From sequence record NC_006883.2: DNA of 64,000 bases. One strand, given 5' to 3'. The notes beneath the pieces were generated by a model. The model did no database searches, was not told where the DNA came from, and saw only the letters and a program-made list of their open reading frames with translations. The translations under genes and the position numbers were made by a program. Shown here one piece after another: positions 4,556 to 60,717 of the stretch; position 1 is the first letter of the stretch, and each line of letters starts with the position of its first letter.

Positions 4556-4600
4556 ATTATAGCAACACCAACACGGAAATCTACCTGTCTTGTGCCACTT
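4556..4600 (-). promoter_or_regulatory. Leftward early-type promoter: AAGTGGCACA (4591-4600) plus TATAAT (4556-4561)
   Basis: Canonical spacing; left half of the dyad 4591-4614. Confidence 0.7.
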
Positions 4601-4604
4601 TAAT

Positions 4605-4649
4605 AACTGGCACACTCTATACACCATTCGCTTCAATCTGGTGTATTGT
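4605..4649 (+). promoter_or_regulatory. Early-type promoter: AACTGGCACA, ATACACCA/TGGTGTAT hairpin, TATTGT
   Basis: Canonical spacing; ORF at 4679. Confidence 0.75.
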
Positions 4650-4994: not shown

Positions 4995-5177
4995 ATGAAT
5001 CTCTCCAAAGAAGATCTTCAGATTATCAACGAAGTTTTCTGCCAAGCATACTGCTTCGATCTCCCTGAGAAATGGGATGAGGAGGCAGAGGAGTATGATG
5101 GAGAAGAAGAAACCAATTTCAATTCTACCCGATTCTCTGAGGTTTGGGATAAGATCTCAAGGGAACAGGACAGATAA
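4995..5177 (+). CDS. Hypothetical acidic early protein, about 60 aa
   Basis: ORF track 4974..5177; ATG at 4995 lies downstream of the -10. Confidence 0.7.
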   Translation: MNLSKEDLQIINEVFCQAYCFDLPEKWDEEAEEYDGEEETNFNSTRFSEVWDKISREQDR

Positions 5178-5179
5178 CA

Positions 5180-5224
5180 AACTGGCACACATAAACCCCA
5201 TTCTACGGAGTGGGGTTTTATAAT
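5180..5224 (+). promoter_or_regulatory. Early-type promoter: AACTGGCACA, 11-bp hairpin with TACG loop, TATAAT
   Basis: Canonical spacing; AAGGA RBS and ATG at 5251. Confidence 0.8.
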
Positions 5225-5250
5225 ATTAGTATAAGTTTCAACCTAAAGGA

Positions 5251-5757
5251 ATGAACACCATCACACCAGAAATTCAGTATCAAAACCTCTATGAGCAACT
5301 CTATACCCTGTGTGCAGATCAGGGGTGGGGCGATCCTTTCAGTTATGCCCGTTCCCGTGAGATTCATATGGCAGGTATTTTGGGGCATCGTATTGCAGAT
5401 GACTACTCTGGGGCAGATGCCTTTGACGAAGAGGGAGGGTGTGAGTATAAAAGCACTATCGGTAAGAACATCAACGCCACATACAACGGAATCTCCGTGC
5501 AGGATACGTGGGAGGAGCAGGAGAGATACCTTATTGAGGATAAGATCGGCAAATACACTCATCACTATTATGCACGGTACGAAGGAGGAAAGATTGCAGA
5601 GGTATGGAAACTCAATGCTGCTGACGTGCTAAGAATAGCACTACCAAAGGCAAAGAGGCAGTACCCAAAGAAGAGAGCAGGGAACGCAAAAGATCCCCGT
5701 ATTGGTATTACCATCTCACGGGCAGAGATCACAACCCACGGTGTGCAGGTTATCTAA
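5251..5757 (+). CDS. PvuII-like PD-(D/E)XK endonuclease, 168 aa
   Basis: GADAFDEEGGCEYKS aligns by eye to PvuII GNDAVDNAGQEYELKS; C-terminal YARYEGGKIAEVWKL...KDPRI...HG resembles PvuII FAIYRGIAIEAIYRL...NNPKI...HG; similar length. Confidence 0.7.
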   Translation: MNTITPEIQYQNLYEQLYTLCADQGWGDPFSYARSREIHMAGILGHRIADDYSGADAFDEEGGCEYKSTIGKNINATYNGISVQDTWEEQERYLIEDKIGKYTHHYYARYEGGKIAEVWKLNAADVLRIALPKAKRQYPKKRAGNAKDPRIGITISRAEITTHGVQVI

Positions 5758-5801
5758 CTGGCACACTAAGGGGTTTACAGATCCCCTCAAAACTGTACAA
5801 T
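5742..5801 (+). promoter_or_regulatory. Early-type promoter: dyad TGTGCAGGTT-N4-AACTGGCACA, AGGGG/CCCCT hairpin, TACAAT
   Basis: Spacing within 1 nt of canonical; ORF at 5831. Confidence 0.8.
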
Positions 5802-5830: not shown

Positions 5831-6061
5831 ATGCAACTCAACAAACTCGGCACTAATCAAACAGAGATTACACTTGCCGATGGTCACAAGGTATTTTTCT
5901 CCTACAACACTCCCGTAGCGTGTCAGACACCTGACTACGAATACTACAGAACAGAGCGTAAGTGGAGCGTAACAACATCACGCCACATCAGCAAGTGGTT
6001 AGATGGAGTTAATGCCACAGTAATGCCACAGGATTTCTTCAACACCCTGACAGCAAACTAA
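5831..6061 (+). CDS. Conserved-type small phage protein (FSYNTPVA...SVTTSRHI), 76 aa
   Basis: ORF track; motif common in phage early genes. Confidence 0.8.
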   Translation: MQLNKLGTNQTEITLADGHKVFFSYNTPVACQTPDYEYYRTERKWSVTTSRHISKWLDGVNATVMPQDFFNTLTAN

Positions 6062-6104
6062 CTGGCACACCATGAGTGGCAACTCCTCTCTGAGTTGCTA
6101 TTAT
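6060..6104 (+). promoter_or_regulatory. Early-type promoter: AACTGGCACA, GCAACTC/GAGTTGC hairpin, TATTAT
   Basis: Canonical spacing. Confidence 0.8.
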
Positions 6105-38985: not shown

Positions 38986-40569
38986 ATGGCTAGCATTATT
39001 AGGATCAAACGATCCTCTGGTACTAACAAACCTGCCAGCCTAAATTGGGGAGAAATGGGCTATGTAACTGGTATCGGCAGTTACGGTGGAGTAAATCAAT
39101 ATAAAGATAGAATATTTGTCGGTGATGATGGAAGTAATGTTTTCTCAGTAGGGGGACATTATTATACTTCTATGATGGATCATCAACCAGGATCCATTGC
39201 TGGTGTTACAAATACAAGAAATAGTGATGGTGGTATAGTTGCTGTTCTTGATGATAATAGAAAAGTTGATCAGTGGAATGTAGATAATCTTAGAATGGAT
39301 GGTAATACTTTATCATCCACAAACACAGATGGAGATGTTATATTTGCAACTGATGGAACGGGTGAATTTGCTGTTAGTGATGATACAGCATTCTCATTTG
39401 GTTCTGATAAGGATGTTAAATTTGAGTATGATGAAGATGGTAATGATGAATTAGTAGTATCCAGTCTTACTGGTAAGCAAGTTAAGTTTACTACCCCATT
39501 AAATGTTCAAACTTCATCATATTTTGGTAAAGTTAAGATTGAAGATAACGTTATATCTTCGGTTAGTGGTAGTGGAGATAAACTCTTTATTGACCCATTC
39601 CCCGATGGATTAAGTAATGAAGGTGATGTTATCATCAAAGGTAACTTACAAATTGATGGTACAACAACTTCAGTTAACTCAACTGCCGTAACAGTTAATG
39701 ACCCAATATTTGTTATTGGTGATGTTACCAGTTCTAGGGTAGTTACTGCTCCAGCTACAACTGGTGTTAGTACAATTACAATTGATTCTGTTGTTGGTAT
39801 TAATACTGGTGATATTGTAAGTGGTCATACATCACTTCCAAACTCTGGATTAACAACAGTTACTGAAGTTAATACTACAAATAAAGTTATTACTATTCAG
39901 GGAAGTACTTCTGCTGGTATTACAACAACTTCAGAATTAACAATTACTCATGCTTACGATACTAATACAGATCGTGGTATAGCATTTAAGTATAATACTG
40001 GTATTGGAACTGCAAATAACAAAACTGGTTACTTTGGTTATGTAGATGCTGATTCAAATACAGGAAGTAATGCTCCTGCAAGATCTTGGACTTATGTACC
40101 AGATGCAAGTACGGCAAGTAATACTGTATCTGGAACAAGAGGTTTCTTAGATATCAAAGGTATCTACTATCAGACTGCTGATTACAATGCTAATGGTGCA
40201 GTTTACTTTGATGAGAATGGTTTACAGACCTCAACAAATAATCCAGCTGCTCCTATATTAACATCTAAGCAGATATTAACTGCTGTTACTAAGAATACTC
40301 TTGCATTACCAAGTAATGTAACCCTTTCTATTGGTGATGTTGTTAGACAAGATACTAGTAATGCTTATGGTGTTGTTGAGAGTGCAGTAAGTAACTCAAA
40401 TTCAGTTGATGTAGTTGGTGTTGAGGGAACTTTCACTAATACTTACAATATTAGAAGAGAGGGGCAAAATGGTACAGTTGAAAATCTATCAGTAATACCT
40501 TCTACAGTTTCCGTGATATATACTAATAAGCCTCACTGGTCTTCTACACTTGATGGGGGTACTTTCTAA
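38986..40569 (+). CDS. Tail fibre / baseplate fibre-like protein, 527 aa
   Basis: N-terminal IRIKRS..T..P..L..GE motif; beta-rich; ends LDGGTF. Confidence 0.75.
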   Translation: MASIIRIKRSSGTNKPASLNWGEMGYVTGIGSYGGVNQYKDRIFVGDDGSNVFSVGGHYYTSMMDHQPGSIAGVTNTRNSDGGIVAVLDDNRKVDQWNVDNLRMDGNTLSSTNTDGDVIFATDGTGEFAVSDDTAFSFGSDKDVKFEYDEDGNDELVVSSLTGKQVKFTTPLNVQTSSYFGKVKIEDNVISSVSGSGDKLFIDPFPDGLSNEGDVIIKGNLQIDGTTTSVNSTAVTVNDPIFVIGDVTSSRVVTAPATTGVSTITIDSVVGINTGDIVSGHTSLPNSGLTTVTEVNTTNKVITIQGSTSAGITTTSELTITHAYDTNTDRGIAFKYNTGIGTANNKTGYFGYVDADSNTGSNAPARSWTYVPDASTASNTVSGTRGFLDIKGIYYQTADYNANGAVYFDENGLQTSTNNPAAPILTSKQILTAVTKNTLALPSNVTLSIGDVVRQDTSNAYGVVESAVSNSNSVDVVGVEGTFTNTYNIRREGQNGTVENLSVIPSTVSVIYTNKPHWSSTLDGGTF

Positions 40570-40581
40570 CCTTAAAATATT

Positions 40582-40800
40582 ATGCAACAACAAAATAATG
40601 GTGACGTTGATGTTAATGTTCTTGTAAGTTTATATAATGGTAAATTGGCACAATCATTAAATCAAAATGTACTTTTGGAAGCAAAGTTACAAACTTTAAA
40701 AAATGATTTTGAAGAGGAAGAAAAAAATCTTCAACAAGAAATAATTTCTTTACAAGAAGAAATACAAAAATTGAAAAAGACCAAGAAAACTGATACTTAG
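40582..40800 (+). CDS. Small coiled-coil protein (possible fibre chaperone), 72 aa
   Basis: Heptad-rich; directly after the fibre gene. Confidence 0.7.
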   Translation: MQQQNNGDVDVNVLVSLYNGKLAQSLNQNVLLEAKLQTLKNDFEEEEKNLQQEIISLQEEIQKLKKTKKTDT

Positions 40801-40805
40801 GGGAT

Positions 40806-41651
40806 ATGGCAAAACCAGCAAGTAGACAACAACTTATAGATTACTGCTTACGGAAGCTGGGTGCTCCTGTATTGGAGATTAACCTTGATGATGACCAAAT
40901 AGATGATTCTGTTGATGATGCCATTCAACTCTTTAATGAACGCCATTTCGATGGTGTTGAGAGGATGTTTCTTAAGTATAAGATTACTCAAGCAGATTTA
41001 GATAGGGGTAGAGCAAAAGGTACAGATGGAGTTGGTATTGTAACTACAACTGCTACTTCCACAAATATAGCAGGTTATGGAACTACAACAAGTAGTTGGT
41101 ATGAGACTTCTAATTTCTTACAGGTTCCAGATTCTGTAGTTGGTATAGAAAAGATTTTTAAATTTGATACTAGTACAATATCAGGTGGTATGTTTAGTAT
41201 TAAATATCAGTTATTTTTGAATGATCTTTATAATTTTAATTCTGTAGAATTACTTCAATATTCTATGGTTAAGTCATATTTGGAAGATATTGACTTTTTA
41301 TTAACAACAGATAAGCAAGTAAGATTTAATAAGAGACAAGATAGATTATATTTGGATATAGATTGGGGTGCAGAATCTCTTGATAATTTCTTAGTTCTTG
41401 ATTGTTATAGGGCATTAGATCCAACATCATTTACTCAAGTATATAATGACCCTTTTCTCAAATTGTATCTCACAGCTCTTATGAAGAGACAGTGGGGACA
41501 GAATTTAATCAAATTTCGTGGAGTTAAGTTACCAGGTGGTATAGAACTTAATGGTAGAGAGATTTTTGATGATGCTGAAAGAGATATAGAATCTCTAAGA
41601 TCAAGGATGGCATCTGAATACGAATTACCTCCTTATGATTTTGTGGGTTAA
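40806..41651 (+). CDS. gp13: Neck protein gp13
   Basis: LIDYCLRKLGAPVLEIN; WGQNLIKF.GV.LPGG..LNG. Confidence 0.95.
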   Translation: MAKPASRQQLIDYCLRKLGAPVLEINLDDDQIDDSVDDAIQLFNERHFDGVERMFLKYKITQADLDRGRAKGTDGVGIVTTTATSTNIAGYGTTTSSWYETSNFLQVPDSVVGIEKIFKFDTSTISGGMFSIKYQLFLNDLYNFNSVELLQYSMVKSYLEDIDFLLTTDKQVRFNKRQDRLYLDIDWGAESLDNFLVLDCYRALDPTSFTQVYNDPFLKLYLTALMKRQWGQNLIKFRGVKLPGGIELNGREIFDDAERDIESLRSRMASEYELPPYDFVG

Positions 41652-41657
41652 TAACAC

Positions 41658-43070
41658 ATGGCACTTAATCCATTTTTCCTACAAGGAACATCTTCAGAGC
41701 AAAGATTAACACAGGATCTCATAAACGAGCATCTAAAAATTTACGGTGTTGAAGTAACTTATATTCCAAGAAAATATGTAAATACAAAATCAATTATAGA
41801 AGAGGTTCAATCTTCTAAATTTGATGATAATTTTGCTATAGAAGCATATGTTAACACATATGAAGGATATGGTGGGCAAGGAGATGTATTGACTAAATTT
41901 GGAATGAGTATAAGAGATGAAGTTACTCTTACTATTTCAAAAGAAAGATTTGAAGATTTCATAGCACCATTTATGGCAGGATTGGATGATGGTCCTGGTG
42001 GAAATGAAGAAGTTATACTTGCTACTAGACCAAGAGAGGGAGATTTAGTATTTTTCCCACTCGGATCAAGGTTATTTGAAGTTAAATTTGTAGAACATGA
42101 AGATCCATTCTATCAGTTAGGTAAGAACTACGTTTATCAACTTAAATGTGAGCTCTTTGAATATGAAGATGAAGTTATTGATACTTCTATTGATGCTATA
42201 GATACAGTTGTTCAAGATGATGGTTATATATCTAAACTACAATTGGTTGGTATTGGTAGAACTGCTGAAGTAGCAGCATCTATTGGTGTTGGATATGTTA
42301 GAGAAATATTCCTTAATAATGATGGATCAGGATTCACTTCTCCACCAACAATAACATTCTCAGCTTCTCCAGCATTTACAGATGCAAGAGCAGTTGGTAT
42401 TTTGACAACTAGAGCAAATGTTACTTCTATTGAAAAGATTTTAATGACTAGTGCTGGTGCTGGTTATATTACCCCACCAACTATTACTATTTCTGGTGGT
42501 GGTGGAACTGGTGCTGCTGCAACTTGTTCTATCGAAACTGTTTATCAAGGTGTTGTTAACTTTAACGTTGTTGATGGTGGTGTTGGATATGGAACAGAAC
42601 CTTCAATAGCGGTTACTCAACCTGGTGCTGGAACAACTGCTGTTGGAATAGCATCTATAGGTATGGCAGGATCTGATCAAGTTCTTAAATCAGTTTATAT
42701 TGGTAATCCAGGTCGTGGATATACCGCAACTCCAAATGTAATTGTTGCTGATCCCCCTTCTATGTCTGGTATTGGAACGTTTACTTTTAATGAAGTTATA
42801 AAAGGGTCTAGATCTGGTACAGAAGCAAGAGTTAAATCTTGGGATGATGATACTAAGATATTACTTGTAAGTAATGTTGGTATTGGATCAACTGTATCTG
42901 GTTTCTATACTGGTGAGAGTATTGTAGGGCAAGAATCTGGTGCATCATACGCACTTGGATCTTACAATTCTGATGATGCTAATGATAAATATAATGATGG
43001 TGATGAATTTGAATTTAACGCAGATCAAATCCTAGACTTCACTGAATCAAATCCCTTTGGTAATTTCTAA
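41658..43070 (+). CDS. gp14: Neck protein gp14 with internal Gly-rich insert
   Basis: NPFF, YIPR, RPREGDL, FEVKFVEHE.PFYQLG; ends NPFG. Confidence 0.93.
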   Translation: MALNPFFLQGTSSEQRLTQDLINEHLKIYGVEVTYIPRKYVNTKSIIEEVQSSKFDDNFAIEAYVNTYEGYGGQGDVLTKFGMSIRDEVTLTISKERFEDFIAPFMAGLDDGPGGNEEVILATRPREGDLVFFPLGSRLFEVKFVEHEDPFYQLGKNYVYQLKCELFEYEDEVIDTSIDAIDTVVQDDGYISKLQLVGIGRTAEVAASIGVGYVREIFLNNDGSGFTSPPTITFSASPAFTDARAVGILTTRANVTSIEKILMTSAGAGYITPPTITISGGGGTGAAATCSIETVYQGVVNFNVVDGGVGYGTEPSIAVTQPGAGTTAVGIASIGMAGSDQVLKSVYIGNPGRGYTATPNVIVADPPSMSGIGTFTFNEVIKGSRSGTEARVKSWDDDTKILLVSNVGIGSTVSGFYTGESIVGQESGASYALGSYNSDDANDKYNDGDEFEFNADQILDFTESNPFGNF

Positions 43071-53461: not shown

Positions 53462-55138
53462 ATGGCAAAACTTTTCGGGTTTTCAATTGAGGAAACGCAA
53501 AAGAAATCCACTTCGATAATCAGCCCTGTTCCCAAGAACAATGAGGATGGGGTTGATAATTTCATATCAAGTGGATTTTATGGTCAATATGTAGATATTG
53601 AAGGTGCGTATCGTTCTGAATATGATCTAATAAGAAGATATAGAGAAATGGCACTTCATCCAGAAGCGGATGGTGCTATTGAAGATGTTGTAAATGAAGC
53701 GATAGTTAGTGATTTATATGACTCACCAGTAGAAGTAGAACTTTCAAATTTGAATGCAAGTAATACTTTAAAGAAAAAGATTAGGGAAGAGTTTAGATAT
53801 ATTAAAGAAATGATGGACTTTGATAAAAAGTCTCATGAAATTTTTAGGAATTGGTATGTTGATGGTAGAGTTTTCTACCTAAAAGTTATTGATACTAAGA
53901 ACCCACAAGAGGGTATTCAAGATCTTAGATATATTGATCCATTAAAAATAAAGTTTATTCGTCAAGAGAAAAGGAAACCAGGTAATCAAGATCCTGCCAT
54001 AAGAGTTAGAAGTGAACAGGATGTAGTCCCAAACCCTGAGTTTGAAGAGTTTTATATTTACACTCCCAAAGTCCAACATCCAACAGGGATGGTGGGTCAA
54101 ATGGGCGGTAAGAATTCTATTAAGATTGCTAAGGATTCTATTACCATGTGTACTTCTGGTTTAGTTGATAGAAATAAGAATAGAGTTCTTTCATATCTCC
54201 ATAAAGCAATTAAGGCACTTAATCAACTTAGAATGATTGAGGATTCTCTTGTTATCTACAGATTATCAAGAGCACCTGAAAGAAGAATATTCTATATTGA
54301 TGTAGGTAATCTACCAAAAGTAAAGGCAGAACAGTACCTAAAAGAGGTAATGTCTCGCTACAGAAATAAGTTAGTTTACGATGCGAACACAGGTGAAGTT
54401 CGTGATGATCGTAAATTTATGAGTATGATGGAAGATTTCTGGTTGCCTAGAAGAGAAGGTGGTCGGGGAACTGAAATTACAACTCTACCTGGTGGTCAGA
54501 ATTTAGGTGAATTATCTGATGTTGACTATTTCCAAAAGAAACTTTATAGAGCTTTAGGTGTTCCTGAATCAAGAATCGCTGCTGAAGGTGGTTTTAATTT
54601 AGGTCGTTCATCAGAGATCTTAAGAGATGAACTTAAATTTGCTAAGTTTGTAGGACGTTTAAGAAAGCGTTTTGCAGCAATGTTTAACGATATGCTTAAG
54701 ACACAATTAGTTCTTAAGAATATTGTTACTCCAGAAGATTGGAAAACTATGGAAGATCATATTCAATATGACTTCTTATATGACAACCAATTTGCAGAAC
54801 TTAAAGAATCCGAACTTATGGAAGGTAGATTGGGTATGCTTGCAACAATCGAACCTTATATTGGTAAGTATTATTCTACAGAATATGTCCGTAAGAGAGT
54901 TTTGCGACAAACTGATATGGAAATTGAAGAAATTGATACTCAAATTGAAGATGAAATTCAAAAAGGAATCATTCCAGATCCATCTCAAATCGATCCAATA
55001 ACAGGAGAACCATTACCTCAAGAGGGTGATCCTGCTATGGAAGGAATGGGTGAACAACCAGTAGATCCAGATTTAGAAGCACAAGCACAAGCAGTTGATG
55101 CTCAATATTCAAAAGATACTAAGAAAGCCGAGTTATAA
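53462..55138 (+). CDS. gp20: Portal protein gp20
   Basis: YRLSRAPERRIFYIDVGNLP; EDFWLPRREGGRGTEI.TLPGG. Confidence 0.98.
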   Translation: MAKLFGFSIEETQKKSTSIISPVPKNNEDGVDNFISSGFYGQYVDIEGAYRSEYDLIRRYREMALHPEADGAIEDVVNEAIVSDLYDSPVEVELSNLNASNTLKKKIREEFRYIKEMMDFDKKSHEIFRNWYVDGRVFYLKVIDTKNPQEGIQDLRYIDPLKIKFIRQEKRKPGNQDPAIRVRSEQDVVPNPEFEEFYIYTPKVQHPTGMVGQMGGKNSIKIAKDSITMCTSGLVDRNKNRVLSYLHKAIKALNQLRMIEDSLVIYRLSRAPERRIFYIDVGNLPKVKAEQYLKEVMSRYRNKLVYDANTGEVRDDRKFMSMMEDFWLPRREGGRGTEITTLPGGQNLGELSDVDYFQKKLYRALGVPESRIAAEGGFNLGRSSEILRDELKFAKFVGRLRKRFAAMFNDMLKTQLVLKNIVTPEDWKTMEDHIQYDFLYDNQFAELKESELMEGRLGMLATIEPYIGKYYSTEYVRKRVLRQTDMEIEEIDTQIEDEIQKGIIPDPSQIDPITGEPLPQEGDPAMEGMGEQPVDPDLEAQAQAVDAQYSKDTKKAEL

Positions 55139-59861: not shown

Positions 59862-60286
59862 ATCTTGATAAAATTCAGGAGATGTGGGAGCGTGATGCTG
59901 TCATTGACCCTGATAATCTACATGATGAATCCTTGAAGATTCCCCAATTACACTCAAAGTATTATACAGTTTATAATACAGTTACTTTGATGCGTGAAAA
60001 AGCAAGAGAGCAATATAATAAAACAAGATTGGAAAGGCATAATTACTATACTGGTAAAGCACCAGCAGAGGTTTATATTGAGGAACCTTTTGGATATAAG
60101 GTAAGAGAAAAGGATGCCATACAGAGGTATATGGAAGCAGATGAGAAGATGTCAAAGATAGATCTTAAAATAAGATATTATGATACTACATTAAAGTTTT
60201 TAGAAGAGATAATTAAAAACATTTCTAATAGAACTTTTCAAATAAAAAATGCAATAGAATGGAATAAGTTCCAAGCAGGTATGTAA
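59858..60286 (+). CDS. uvsY: Recombination mediator UvsY
   Basis: W..D..ID...L..ESL.IP.LH.KY; IKNAIEW.KF..G. Confidence 0.93.
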   Translation: MNLDKIQEMWERDAVIDPDNLHDESLKIPQLHSKYYTVYNTVTLMREKAREQYNKTRLERHNYYTGKAPAEVYIEEPFGYKVREKDAIQRYMEADEKMSKIDLKIRYYDTTLKFLEEIIKNISNRTFQIKNAIEWNKFQAGM

Positions 60287-60313
60287 TAAATACTTTATAT
60301 TTTCAATAACTTC

Positions 60314-60538
60314 ATGGATCATCATTCTGGTGAGACTGATGAATGGGTAGTTGAGATTAAGATGGGCATCCAAGAAATTAGGTTGCTTTACCATCATATA
60401 AACGATTCCTTATATGGACCTTATCCAAAAAAGTCCGTATATTCAATAGATCAGCTTGCATATCTACGTGCATTAAAAAATAAATTGTTTGCGATAATTT
60501 GCGAATATAGTTATGATATGGAAGAATTTGATAAATAA
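60314..60538 (+). CDS. Hypothetical protein, 74 aa
   Basis: ORF track; late-like AATAAATA at 60285-60292. Confidence 0.65.
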   Translation: MDHHSGETDEWVVEIKMGIQEIRLLYHHINDSLYGPYPKKSVYSIDQLAYLRALKNKLFAIICEYSYDMEEFDK

Positions 60539-60561
60539 AGTATAAAGTAATTTTTGTTACG

Positions 60562-60717
60562 ATGAAGCCAACTCCAAAAGAAAGCAAGAAAATCCACGAG
60601 AACTATGAGAAAGTTGTGGGACATCTTATTGAAGAAAAGTATGCTGTAGATGCTGAAGCAGCAGATAAGATTATTTCAGGTATGAGTCAAGAATGGTTTG
60701 ATACCATCGTAGGATAA
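60562..60717 (+). CDS. Small protein, 51 aa (HLIEEKYAVDAEAADKIISGMSQEW)
   Basis: Read manually; coupled to the next ORF. Confidence 0.65.
   Translation: MKPTPKESKKIHENYEKVVGHLIEEKYAVDAEAADKIISGMSQEWFDTIVG

Follow-up and report, generated by a model that had tools for sequence, protein, structure and literature searches.

The stretch of DNA analysed here, hereafter the window, comprises 64,000 nucleotides of record NC_006883.2 (record positions 62001-126000; a record position is the window position plus 62000) and comes from Prochlorococcus phage P-SSM2, a T4-like cyanomyovirus of the Kyanoviridae. Near its beginning lies PSSM2_100.1, a coding sequence (CDS) annotated in the record with the product 'hypothetical protein'; the surrounding 2 kb show 100% identity to P-SSM2. 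The gene is preceded by PSSM2_100, whose CDS ends at window position 5177, and followed by PSSM2_100.2. A sequence-only reading of the window had taken PSSM2_100.1 for a solitary restriction endonuclease resembling PvuII, expressed from an early promoter of its own. Our analysis keeps the resemblance to PvuII and replaces the solitary nuclease by one half of a probable restriction-modification (R-M) pair, the other half of which is the methyltransferase gene PSSM2_078, located just outside the window.

The translation of PSSM2_100.1 contains the segment S53-G54-A55-D56-A57-F58-D59-E-E-G-G-C-E65-Y66-K67-S68, and the motif that had been picked out by eye (G-x-D56-A-x-D...E65-Y-K67-S) is indeed present in it. 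In an alignment of 34 homologues sharing 63-89% identity, D56, E65 and K67 are invariant, as are about 40 other positions. A word-indexed search returned 1097 homologous protein clusters, nearly all of them unnamed and from marine metagenomes, and the sole match of the P-SSM2 nuclease in a scan of PHROGs was a family of unknown function. The relation to PvuII was reached through the homologues and the fold, as direct family scans of the P-SSM2 protein came up empty. The profile PF09225 (Endonuc-PvuII) was matched by 15 of the 34 homologues at E<=1. One of these, P0075, scored 26.8 bits over profile positions 3-150 of 155 and passed the gathering score of 25 bits, which was used as the criterion of Pfam membership. 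An AlphaFold2 model of PSSM2_100.1, built on the homologue alignment, had a predicted local distance difference test (pLDDT) score of 94.2 and a predicted template modelling score of 0.87. When this model was compared with the Protein Data Bank (PDB) by Foldseek, ranks 1-10 were all PvuII chains (E 3e-7 to 9e-6, probability 1.00, template modelling score 0.56-0.70). In a second comparison with VIA-align, which covered 48,161 chains, PvuII was again at the top with a Z of 13.4 and a root-mean-square deviation of 3.7 over 151 residues, pairing model residues 1-168 with chain residues 3-157. The predicted fold is that of PvuII over the whole chain and belongs to the PD-(D/E)XK class; the likeness first noticed by eye is therefore upheld by both the family matches in the homologues and the fold searches and is not a chance of visual alignment. 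The ratio of nonsynonymous to synonymous substitution rates of the nuclease gene is 0.064 and 0.082 against its closest relatives, which share the split gene arrangement described below. The gene is under strong purifying selection. These data support the assignment of the predicted product of PSSM2_100.1 as a PvuII-like PD-(D/E)XK endonuclease with an intact catalytic triad.

The closest known enzyme, R.PvuII of Proteus vulgaris (Type IIP; PF09225; PDB 1PVI, 1PVU and 1NI0), is of similar size, with 157 aa as compared with 168 aa. The two agree in fold along their whole length and have the GxDAxD...E-x-K-S active-site motif in common; the alignment also takes in the D-x-F segment that follows helix 1 and, at the C-terminus, the x-x-P-(K/R)-I segment. 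A phmmer comparison of P0075 with PvuII gave a weak match (E 0.22), in which D56 stands opposite PvuII D58 within GxDAxD. There are also differences. Identity is about 17-20%, and the gap from the Asp to the Glu of the motif holds 9 intervening residues in PvuII and 8 in PSSM2_100.1. The PvuII gene is carried on a bacterial plasmid, whereas the PSSM2_100.1 family is found on lytic phages, and no gene for a C (controller) protein was seen between or beside the cyanophage pair.

P-SSM2 encodes four methyltransferases, namely PSSM2_041 and PSSM2_068 of the N6_N4 type (at 43.7 and 54.9 kb of the record), PSSM2_078 (60.1 kb) and a D12-class enzyme (139.2 kb). All matches to PF01555, to PF02086 and to the small methyltransferase family of PSSM2_078 fall outside record positions 62001-126000, and the earlier statement that no methyltransferase is present in the window was correct. 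The small family comprises proteins of 176-197 aa, other copies of which lie in loci L006 (10510-11061) and L093 (4479-5009). It matches PHROG 799 'DNA methyltransferase' at E 1e-36, the NPPF motif is invariant among its homologues, and sub-threshold Pfam matches around motif IV were obtained to Eco57I, EcoRI_methylase and MTS. The structural model of the small methyltransferase has a mean pLDDT of 73, with core blocks at 80-93. Its best structural match was the catalytic domain of M.TaqI (E 1.4e-5, probability 1.00), followed by M.BseCI, Type I M subunits and CamA. No separate, recognisable target-recognition domain was found in the model. Based on this model, the partner is predicted to be a minimal DNA methyltransferase of the N6-adenine type, with a catalytic domain like that of M.TaqI. 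In this respect the cyanophage pair departs from the PvuII system, in which M.PvuII is an N4-cytosine enzyme of PF01555. Remoter relatives of the small methyltransferase, with 27-45% identity, occur in Thermus, Campylobacter, Listeria, Fusobacterium and Streptococcus phages.

The association of the nuclease gene (R) with the small methyltransferase gene (M) was quantified in 80 IMG/VR loci anchored on R and 80 anchored on M. In 63 of the 80 R-anchored loci, M, here a gene for an NPPF methyltransferase of 180-197 aa, lies on the same strand no more than 60 nt downstream; in six more it is about 1 kb downstream with another open reading frame (ORF) between the two, and in one the contig end cuts the region. 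In the M-anchored loci, R was found directly upstream on the same strand in 66 of 80. In metagenome contigs, the 3' end of R is overlapped by a gene for a protein of 183-190 aa that is 75-78% identical to PSSM2_078; the shared stretch measures 4 nt in L006 and 20 nt in L010. A cognate-type methyltransferase gene thus directly follows or overlaps R in about 80% of related loci, and the description of the nuclease as solitary does not hold. The distribution among cultured phages leads to the same point. A search of 50,697 phage records found R only in P-SSM2, in P-SSM5 (a 98.8% identical copy) and in P-TIM68 (51%), and close homologues of M among cultured phages are confined to the same three. 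The gene order in P-TIM68 is an N6_N4 methylase (gp049), R (gp050) and, after 10 nt, the small methyltransferase (gp051). The widespread 'dam' gene (N6_N4, T4-GC 38) does not track R, because it is also present in P-SSM4, a phage without the nuclease. The gene adjacency in relatives and the identical distribution in cultured phages mark R as the probable half of a phage-borne Type II R-M pair. As judged from gene order, an ancestral R-then-M unit appears to have been split apart in the P-SSM2/P-SSM5 lineage.

The nuclease clade is essentially phage-borne. There are 424 stretches with the nuclease in IMG/VR, while a scan of about 185,000 prokaryote genomes, one per species, found it on just two contigs, both shorter than 3.3 kb and both in metagenome-assembled genomes. 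At record positions 146698-146973 of P-RSM4 (L171), a sequence interrupted by 4 stop codons matches the nuclease profile very weakly in its C-terminal half (E 0.009); it is either a decayed remnant or a chance match.

Based on these results, we consider PSSM2_100.1 to be, probably, the restriction half of a PvuII-family Type IIP R-M pair of T4-like marine cyanophages, with PSSM2_078 as its partner. The fold, the conserved triad, the purifying selection and the genetic linkage to a methyltransferase carry this assignment directly. From them we infer catalysis, the site, dimerisation, protection by PSSM2_078, the timing of expression and the biological benefit, which may be pictured as follows. 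By analogy with PvuII, the nuclease would bind as a homodimer to a short palindrome other than CAGCTG and would cut it in a Mg2+-dependent manner through D56, E65 and K67. Phage DNA would enter the cell already methylated from the previous cycle, and PSSM2_078 would keep this methylation up. The cuts would then fall on unmethylated DNA in the infected cell, namely that of the host chromosome and of any co-infecting phage without the methylase. Degradation of host DNA and exclusion of rival phages are, by analogy, plausible roles of such a pair.

The surroundings of the pair vary among loci. The ORF that separates R from M in six R-anchored loci encodes 305-338 aa (for example L034:1161-2174, L063:2299-3222 and, in L067, between 7516 and 8660) and is either of a DUF6551/ParB-like type (PHROG 2558) or of PHROG 5778, whose function is unknown. 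A second methyltransferase gene often lies directly upstream of R, of the D12 class in L010-L012 (9117-9932) and of the N6_N4 type in P-TIM68 (L093:2979-3893), and such loci are methylase-nuclease-methylase triplets. At the equivalent place P-SSM4 carries a different annotated pair, 'restriction endonuclease II' and a DNA methyltransferase (record 40590-42235; L165 20590-22235), which adjoins dam (T4-GC 38) and a helicase gene (T4-GC 36). In cyanomyoviruses, R-M cassettes seem to be exchanged for one another in the region around dam and the helicase gene. For Eco29kI-type operons, R is described as placed before M with overlapping frames (PMC3113576), an organisation also seen in the cyanophage relatives. 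The Eco29kI enzymes belong to unrelated families, however, and in P-SSM2 the operon is broken up, with R having its own promoter.

The next question is which site the nuclease would recognise. PvuII reads CAGCTG through the residues H84/H85 and N140/N141, the numbering of which agrees with the P0075 alignment. In that alignment, which is weak, H84/H85 are replaced by V/Q and N140/N141 by K/D; the P-SSM2 protein has V83/Q84 and K147/D148 at these places. The window contains four copies of CAGCTG (18922, 40244, 48405 and 56108), as compared with a shuffle expectation of 8.4 +/- 3, and avoidance of the hexamer within the window was not significant in the shuffle test. All four sites had been listed before, the second of them wrongly at 40184. 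Since the reading residues of PvuII are replaced and CAGCTG is not avoided, the specificity of the nuclease, as far as can be told from its residues, very probably differs from CAGCTG, an option that had been raised from the presence of the sites.

Avoidance of short words was then compared between carriers and non-carriers of the pair. At the level of whole genomes, the carriers were P-SSM2 and P-TIM68 and the non-carriers were the Prochlorococcus phages P-SSM4, P-SSM7, P-HM1 and P-RSM4; at the level of loci, 93 non-redundant carrier loci (1.0 Mb) were set against 53 helicase-anchored non-carrier loci (0.89 Mb). No gapped 3+3 palindrome stood out. GTGCAC was considered as a site, as P-SSM2 has none where 24 are expected, and was rejected, as the non-carrier P-SSM7 also has none where 21 are expected. 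The hexamer is low in metagenome loci both with and without the pair (0.07 in carriers, 0.15 in non-carriers). P-SSM2 and P-SSM7 were both isolated on Prochlorococcus NATL1A, and GTGCAC is near expectation in P-SSM4, P-HM1 and P-RSM4; its absence from the first two is probably an avoidance of host or shared restriction activity.

The tetramer CATG gave a larger difference. The two carrier genomes have observed/expected ratios of 0.46 and 0.55 and the non-carriers 0.69-0.79; among the loci, the medians are 0.22 for carriers (57 loci) and 0.75 for matched non-carriers (53 loci; Mann-Whitney p 9e-11). The carrier/non-carrier ratio of CATG is the lowest of 136 tetramers, and the depletion is seen in every flanking context. 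In the helicase tree, however, low-CATG non-carriers are interleaved with carriers. Neither R nor M turned up in five low-CATG contigs, among them a complete genome of 222 kb, that were searched over their full length, and in an independent-pairs test about 5 of 6 pairs fell in the same CATG class, with no link to the pair. On these three grounds, CATG avoidance is a trait of lineages in which the pair is patchy. Among marine cyanomyovirus contigs (L218-L296), the CATG ratio has two modes (about 0.05-0.4 and about 0.6-1.0), whose distribution follows the helicase phylogeny. AGCT is strongly depleted (0.2-0.4) in all of these helicase-anchored IMG/VR loci.

The nuclease gene is set in a small cassette with start signals of its own (Table 1). 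Dyad elements ending in TGGCACAC often overlap the stop codon of the preceding gene and are followed by a variable hairpin and then by a -10 box, with no -35. There are nine + strand copies of TGGCACAC genome-wide, eight of which have a TAnnnT hexamer 28 nt on (29 nt in one). The dyad elements bound small single-gene cassettes; in addition to the two copies flanking PSSM2_100.1, nearby copies lie at window positions 4594-4615 and 6049-6070, and further dyad cassettes are found at record positions 53932, 55774, 57064 and 62005. The claim that the gene has a promoter of its own is supported in that a conserved dyad and a perfect TATAAT precede it at a spacing repeated at other copies in the genome. 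A generic sigma-70 scan called no promoter upstream of PSSM2_100.1, and a consensus scan of the hairpin region returned just a 7-pair terminator-like hairpin on the minus strand (5211..5195). The ribosome-binding site that had been proposed is present as AAGGA, though weaker than claimed; it is atypical because it abuts the ATG without a spacer. Expression of PSSM2_100.1 may be early. In Logan contigs from four RNA libraries of one 2015 study of an infected culture, the region was recovered in single pieces of 27-66 kb, which are uninformative on timing, strand and transcription. At window position 5991, inside PSSM2_100.2, the reference has G and the assemblies of all four libraries have A, probably a variant fixed in the phage stock of that laboratory.

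Table 1. Features of the nuclease cassette and its methyltransferase partner (window positions unless marked as record positions)
Feature	Position	Strand	Remarks
PSSM2_100.1, PvuII-fold PD-(D/E)XK restriction endonuclease gene (predicted)	5251..5757	+	168 aa; D56, E65, K67 predicted catalytic
PSSM2_078, small NPPF methyltransferase	record 60090-60683		1.3 kb before window start, 6.6 kb upstream of nuclease gene
Dyad element ending ...CTGGCACAC / ...AACTGGCACAC	5169..5190	+	starts 9 nt before end of PSSM2_100
Hairpin, stem AAACCCCA / TGGGGTTT, 10-nt loop	5193..5218	+	in the -35 place between dyad and -10; read from sequence
-10 box, perfect TATAAT	5219..5224	+	28 nt after dyad; read from sequence
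Purine-rich AAGGA	5246..5250	+	directly before ATG; weak/atypical Shine-Dalgarno
Next dyad copy	5745..5766	+	over last codons and stop of nuclease gene; 3' edge of cassette
-10 box, TACAAT	5796-5801	+	with the 5745 dyad, assigned to downstream PSSM2_100.2

Several observations weigh against the assignment of PSSM2_100.1 and PSSM2_078 as an R-M pair. With regard to the nuclease, the P-SSM2 protein itself had no match in Pfam (E<=10), NCBIfam or PADLOC, and sequence and profile searches against the PDB returned nothing significant. Owing to a loop that is shorter by one residue, E65 and K67 are shifted by one position against E68 and K70 of PvuII and pair with them only if a one-residue gap is allowed. 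With regard to the methyltransferase, the absent target-recognition domain and the moderate model weaken the case for a site-specific methylation matched to R. With regard to the site, no palindromic hexamer, the length of word for which an avoidance analysis had been suggested, is purged in both cultured carriers yet kept in the four non-carriers; CATG, the depletion of which is lost after control for relatedness, was rejected as the site and is retained as a weak lead. With regard to linkage, R and M are 6.6 kb apart and not adjacent in P-SSM2 and P-SSM5, no dyad-type promoter stands ahead of M in P-SSM2, and no partner is within reach in 10 of the 80 R-anchored and 8 of the 80 M-anchored loci.

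The points on linkage bear most directly on a truly solitary nuclease, which would degrade host DNA while the phage escapes through site loss or through another of its methyltransferases. The distance to the closest small methyltransferase copy in P-SSM2 and P-SSM5 would suit it, as would the ten R loci without a partner, the promoter-type element of the nuclease gene and the three further methyltransferases of P-SSM2. We nevertheless consider a solitary nuclease improbable. R and M are adjacent or overlapping in the large majority of loci, whichever gene is used as the anchor (63/80 and 66/80), and the three cultured phages that carry the one are exactly those that carry the other. Six of the ten partnerless loci belong to the P-SSM2-like clade and have upstream flanks of 5 kb or less; they say little about the partner, because such flanks are too short to reach an M placed as in P-SSM2. 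Among the alternative sources of protection, dam does not follow the nuclease, as the nuclease-less P-SSM4 has it too.

A second alternative is that the pair is a selfish mobile R-M cassette of an addiction or homing-like kind, spread through the boundaries of promoter cassettes without benefit to the phage. The pair is patchy within helicase clades, where near-identical helicases are found with and without it, and complete relatives lack both genes; other genes have been inserted between R and M. Promoter/stem-loop cassettes (PeSLs) mediate gene shuffling in other T4-type phages, in studies that do not cover cyanophages (PMC2839356, PMC4122927), and the flanking repeated dyads of P-SSM2 look like these shuffling elements. 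A selfish cassette, however, would explain the persistence of the pair and not its identity, and it is compatible with an active restriction enzyme. The purifying selection and the wide distribution over 424 IMG/VR stretches fit selfish and beneficial readings alike. We judge a cassette without any benefit to the phage to be quite improbable.

The third alternative is a modification-dependent nuclease, which had also been offered by the sequence-only reading. Such an enzyme would have a PvuII-like fold and cut methylated host or rival-phage DNA in place of unmethylated DNA, in the manner of NhoI, the N-terminal domain of Eco15I or DpnI. This alternative draws on the order of the VIA-align matches, in which NhoI (Z 10.6) and the N-terminal domain of Eco15I (Z 8.7) come second and third after PvuII, with DpnI at Z 6.9 and generic PD-(D/E)XK nucleases at Z <=7. 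NhoI and Eco15I (PDB 8Q5N and 8Q5M; 5-methylcytosine-dependent) share the fold class of PSSM2_100.1, but at lower scores and 9-14% identity, whereas PvuII scores clearly above them and aligns over the whole length, and the Pfam relation is to Endonuc-PvuII. These enzymes require methylated targets, while the cyanophage nuclease is genetically tied to a methyltransferase. A methylating gene neighbour fits an enzyme that is blocked by methylation; beside a methyl-dependent enzyme it would be a hazard, except where nuclease and methyltransferase had unrelated specificities. Because of this tight linkage the modification-dependent nuclease is disfavoured, and we hold it to be very improbable. Finally, a DNA-binding protein without nuclease activity, suggested by JGI records that name some homologues (P0053, P0054, P0057 and P0075) 'DNA-binding protein Fis' and by a weak, non-significant match to Fis-like proteins (E 0.4-0.5), is scarcely credible in view of the full-length PvuII fold and the invariant D, E and K, for which an inactivated binder would have no need.

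Returning to the R-M pair, the best analogue among lytic viruses known to use such pairs, and its closest functional precedent, would be chlorovirus PBCV-1. This lytic double-stranded DNA virus of a phototroph carries Type II pairs of its own (R.CviAI/M.CviAI at GATC and R.CviAII/M.CviAII at CATG). Its N6-methyladenine methyltransferases are expressed early and shield the viral genome from the virus's own nucleases, and its restriction nucleases are packaged in the virion (PMC7248222). PBCV-1 differs in having a eukaryotic algal host, and the cyanophage pair is likened to it by function. Taken further, the analogy would make the pair a weapon in general use across one large group of oceanic cyanomyoviruses, shredding host and rival DNA early in infection. 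We regard this extension as unlikely, although it merits a statement of what it would entail. In that event the methyltransferase of about 190 aa, having no recognition domain, may methylate with low or borrowed specificity, and the lineage-wide avoidance of CATG in clades with a patchy occurrence of the pair, even in members without it, would be a footprint of phage-against-phage restriction.

Virus-borne Type II R-M systems are already known, and another pair is annotated in P-SSM4. What is unusual in P-SSM2 is the methyltransferase without a recognition domain and the split arrangement, and the latter illustrates how, seen through a window of fixed extent, half of a two-gene system can appear solitary. 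Our literature search found no account of PvuII-like enzymes or of this R/M pair in cyanophages. For a family of about 1100 protein clusters, which RefSeq labels 'hypothetical' and PHROGs 'unknown', the analysis proposes a function. The results suggest a new enzyme of the PvuII fold, the site of which would be different and probably short, paired with one of the smallest DNA adenine methyltransferases.

The nucleases of phage T4 destroy the DNA of the host and spare its own DNA, which contains hydroxymethylcytosine. T4-like cyanophages are without the modification network of T4 (PMC2993671). With an R-M pair that recurs in the genomes of hundreds of uncultured marine cyanophages, there is a concrete candidate, open to testing, both for their discrimination between self and host DNA and for the exclusion of other phages.

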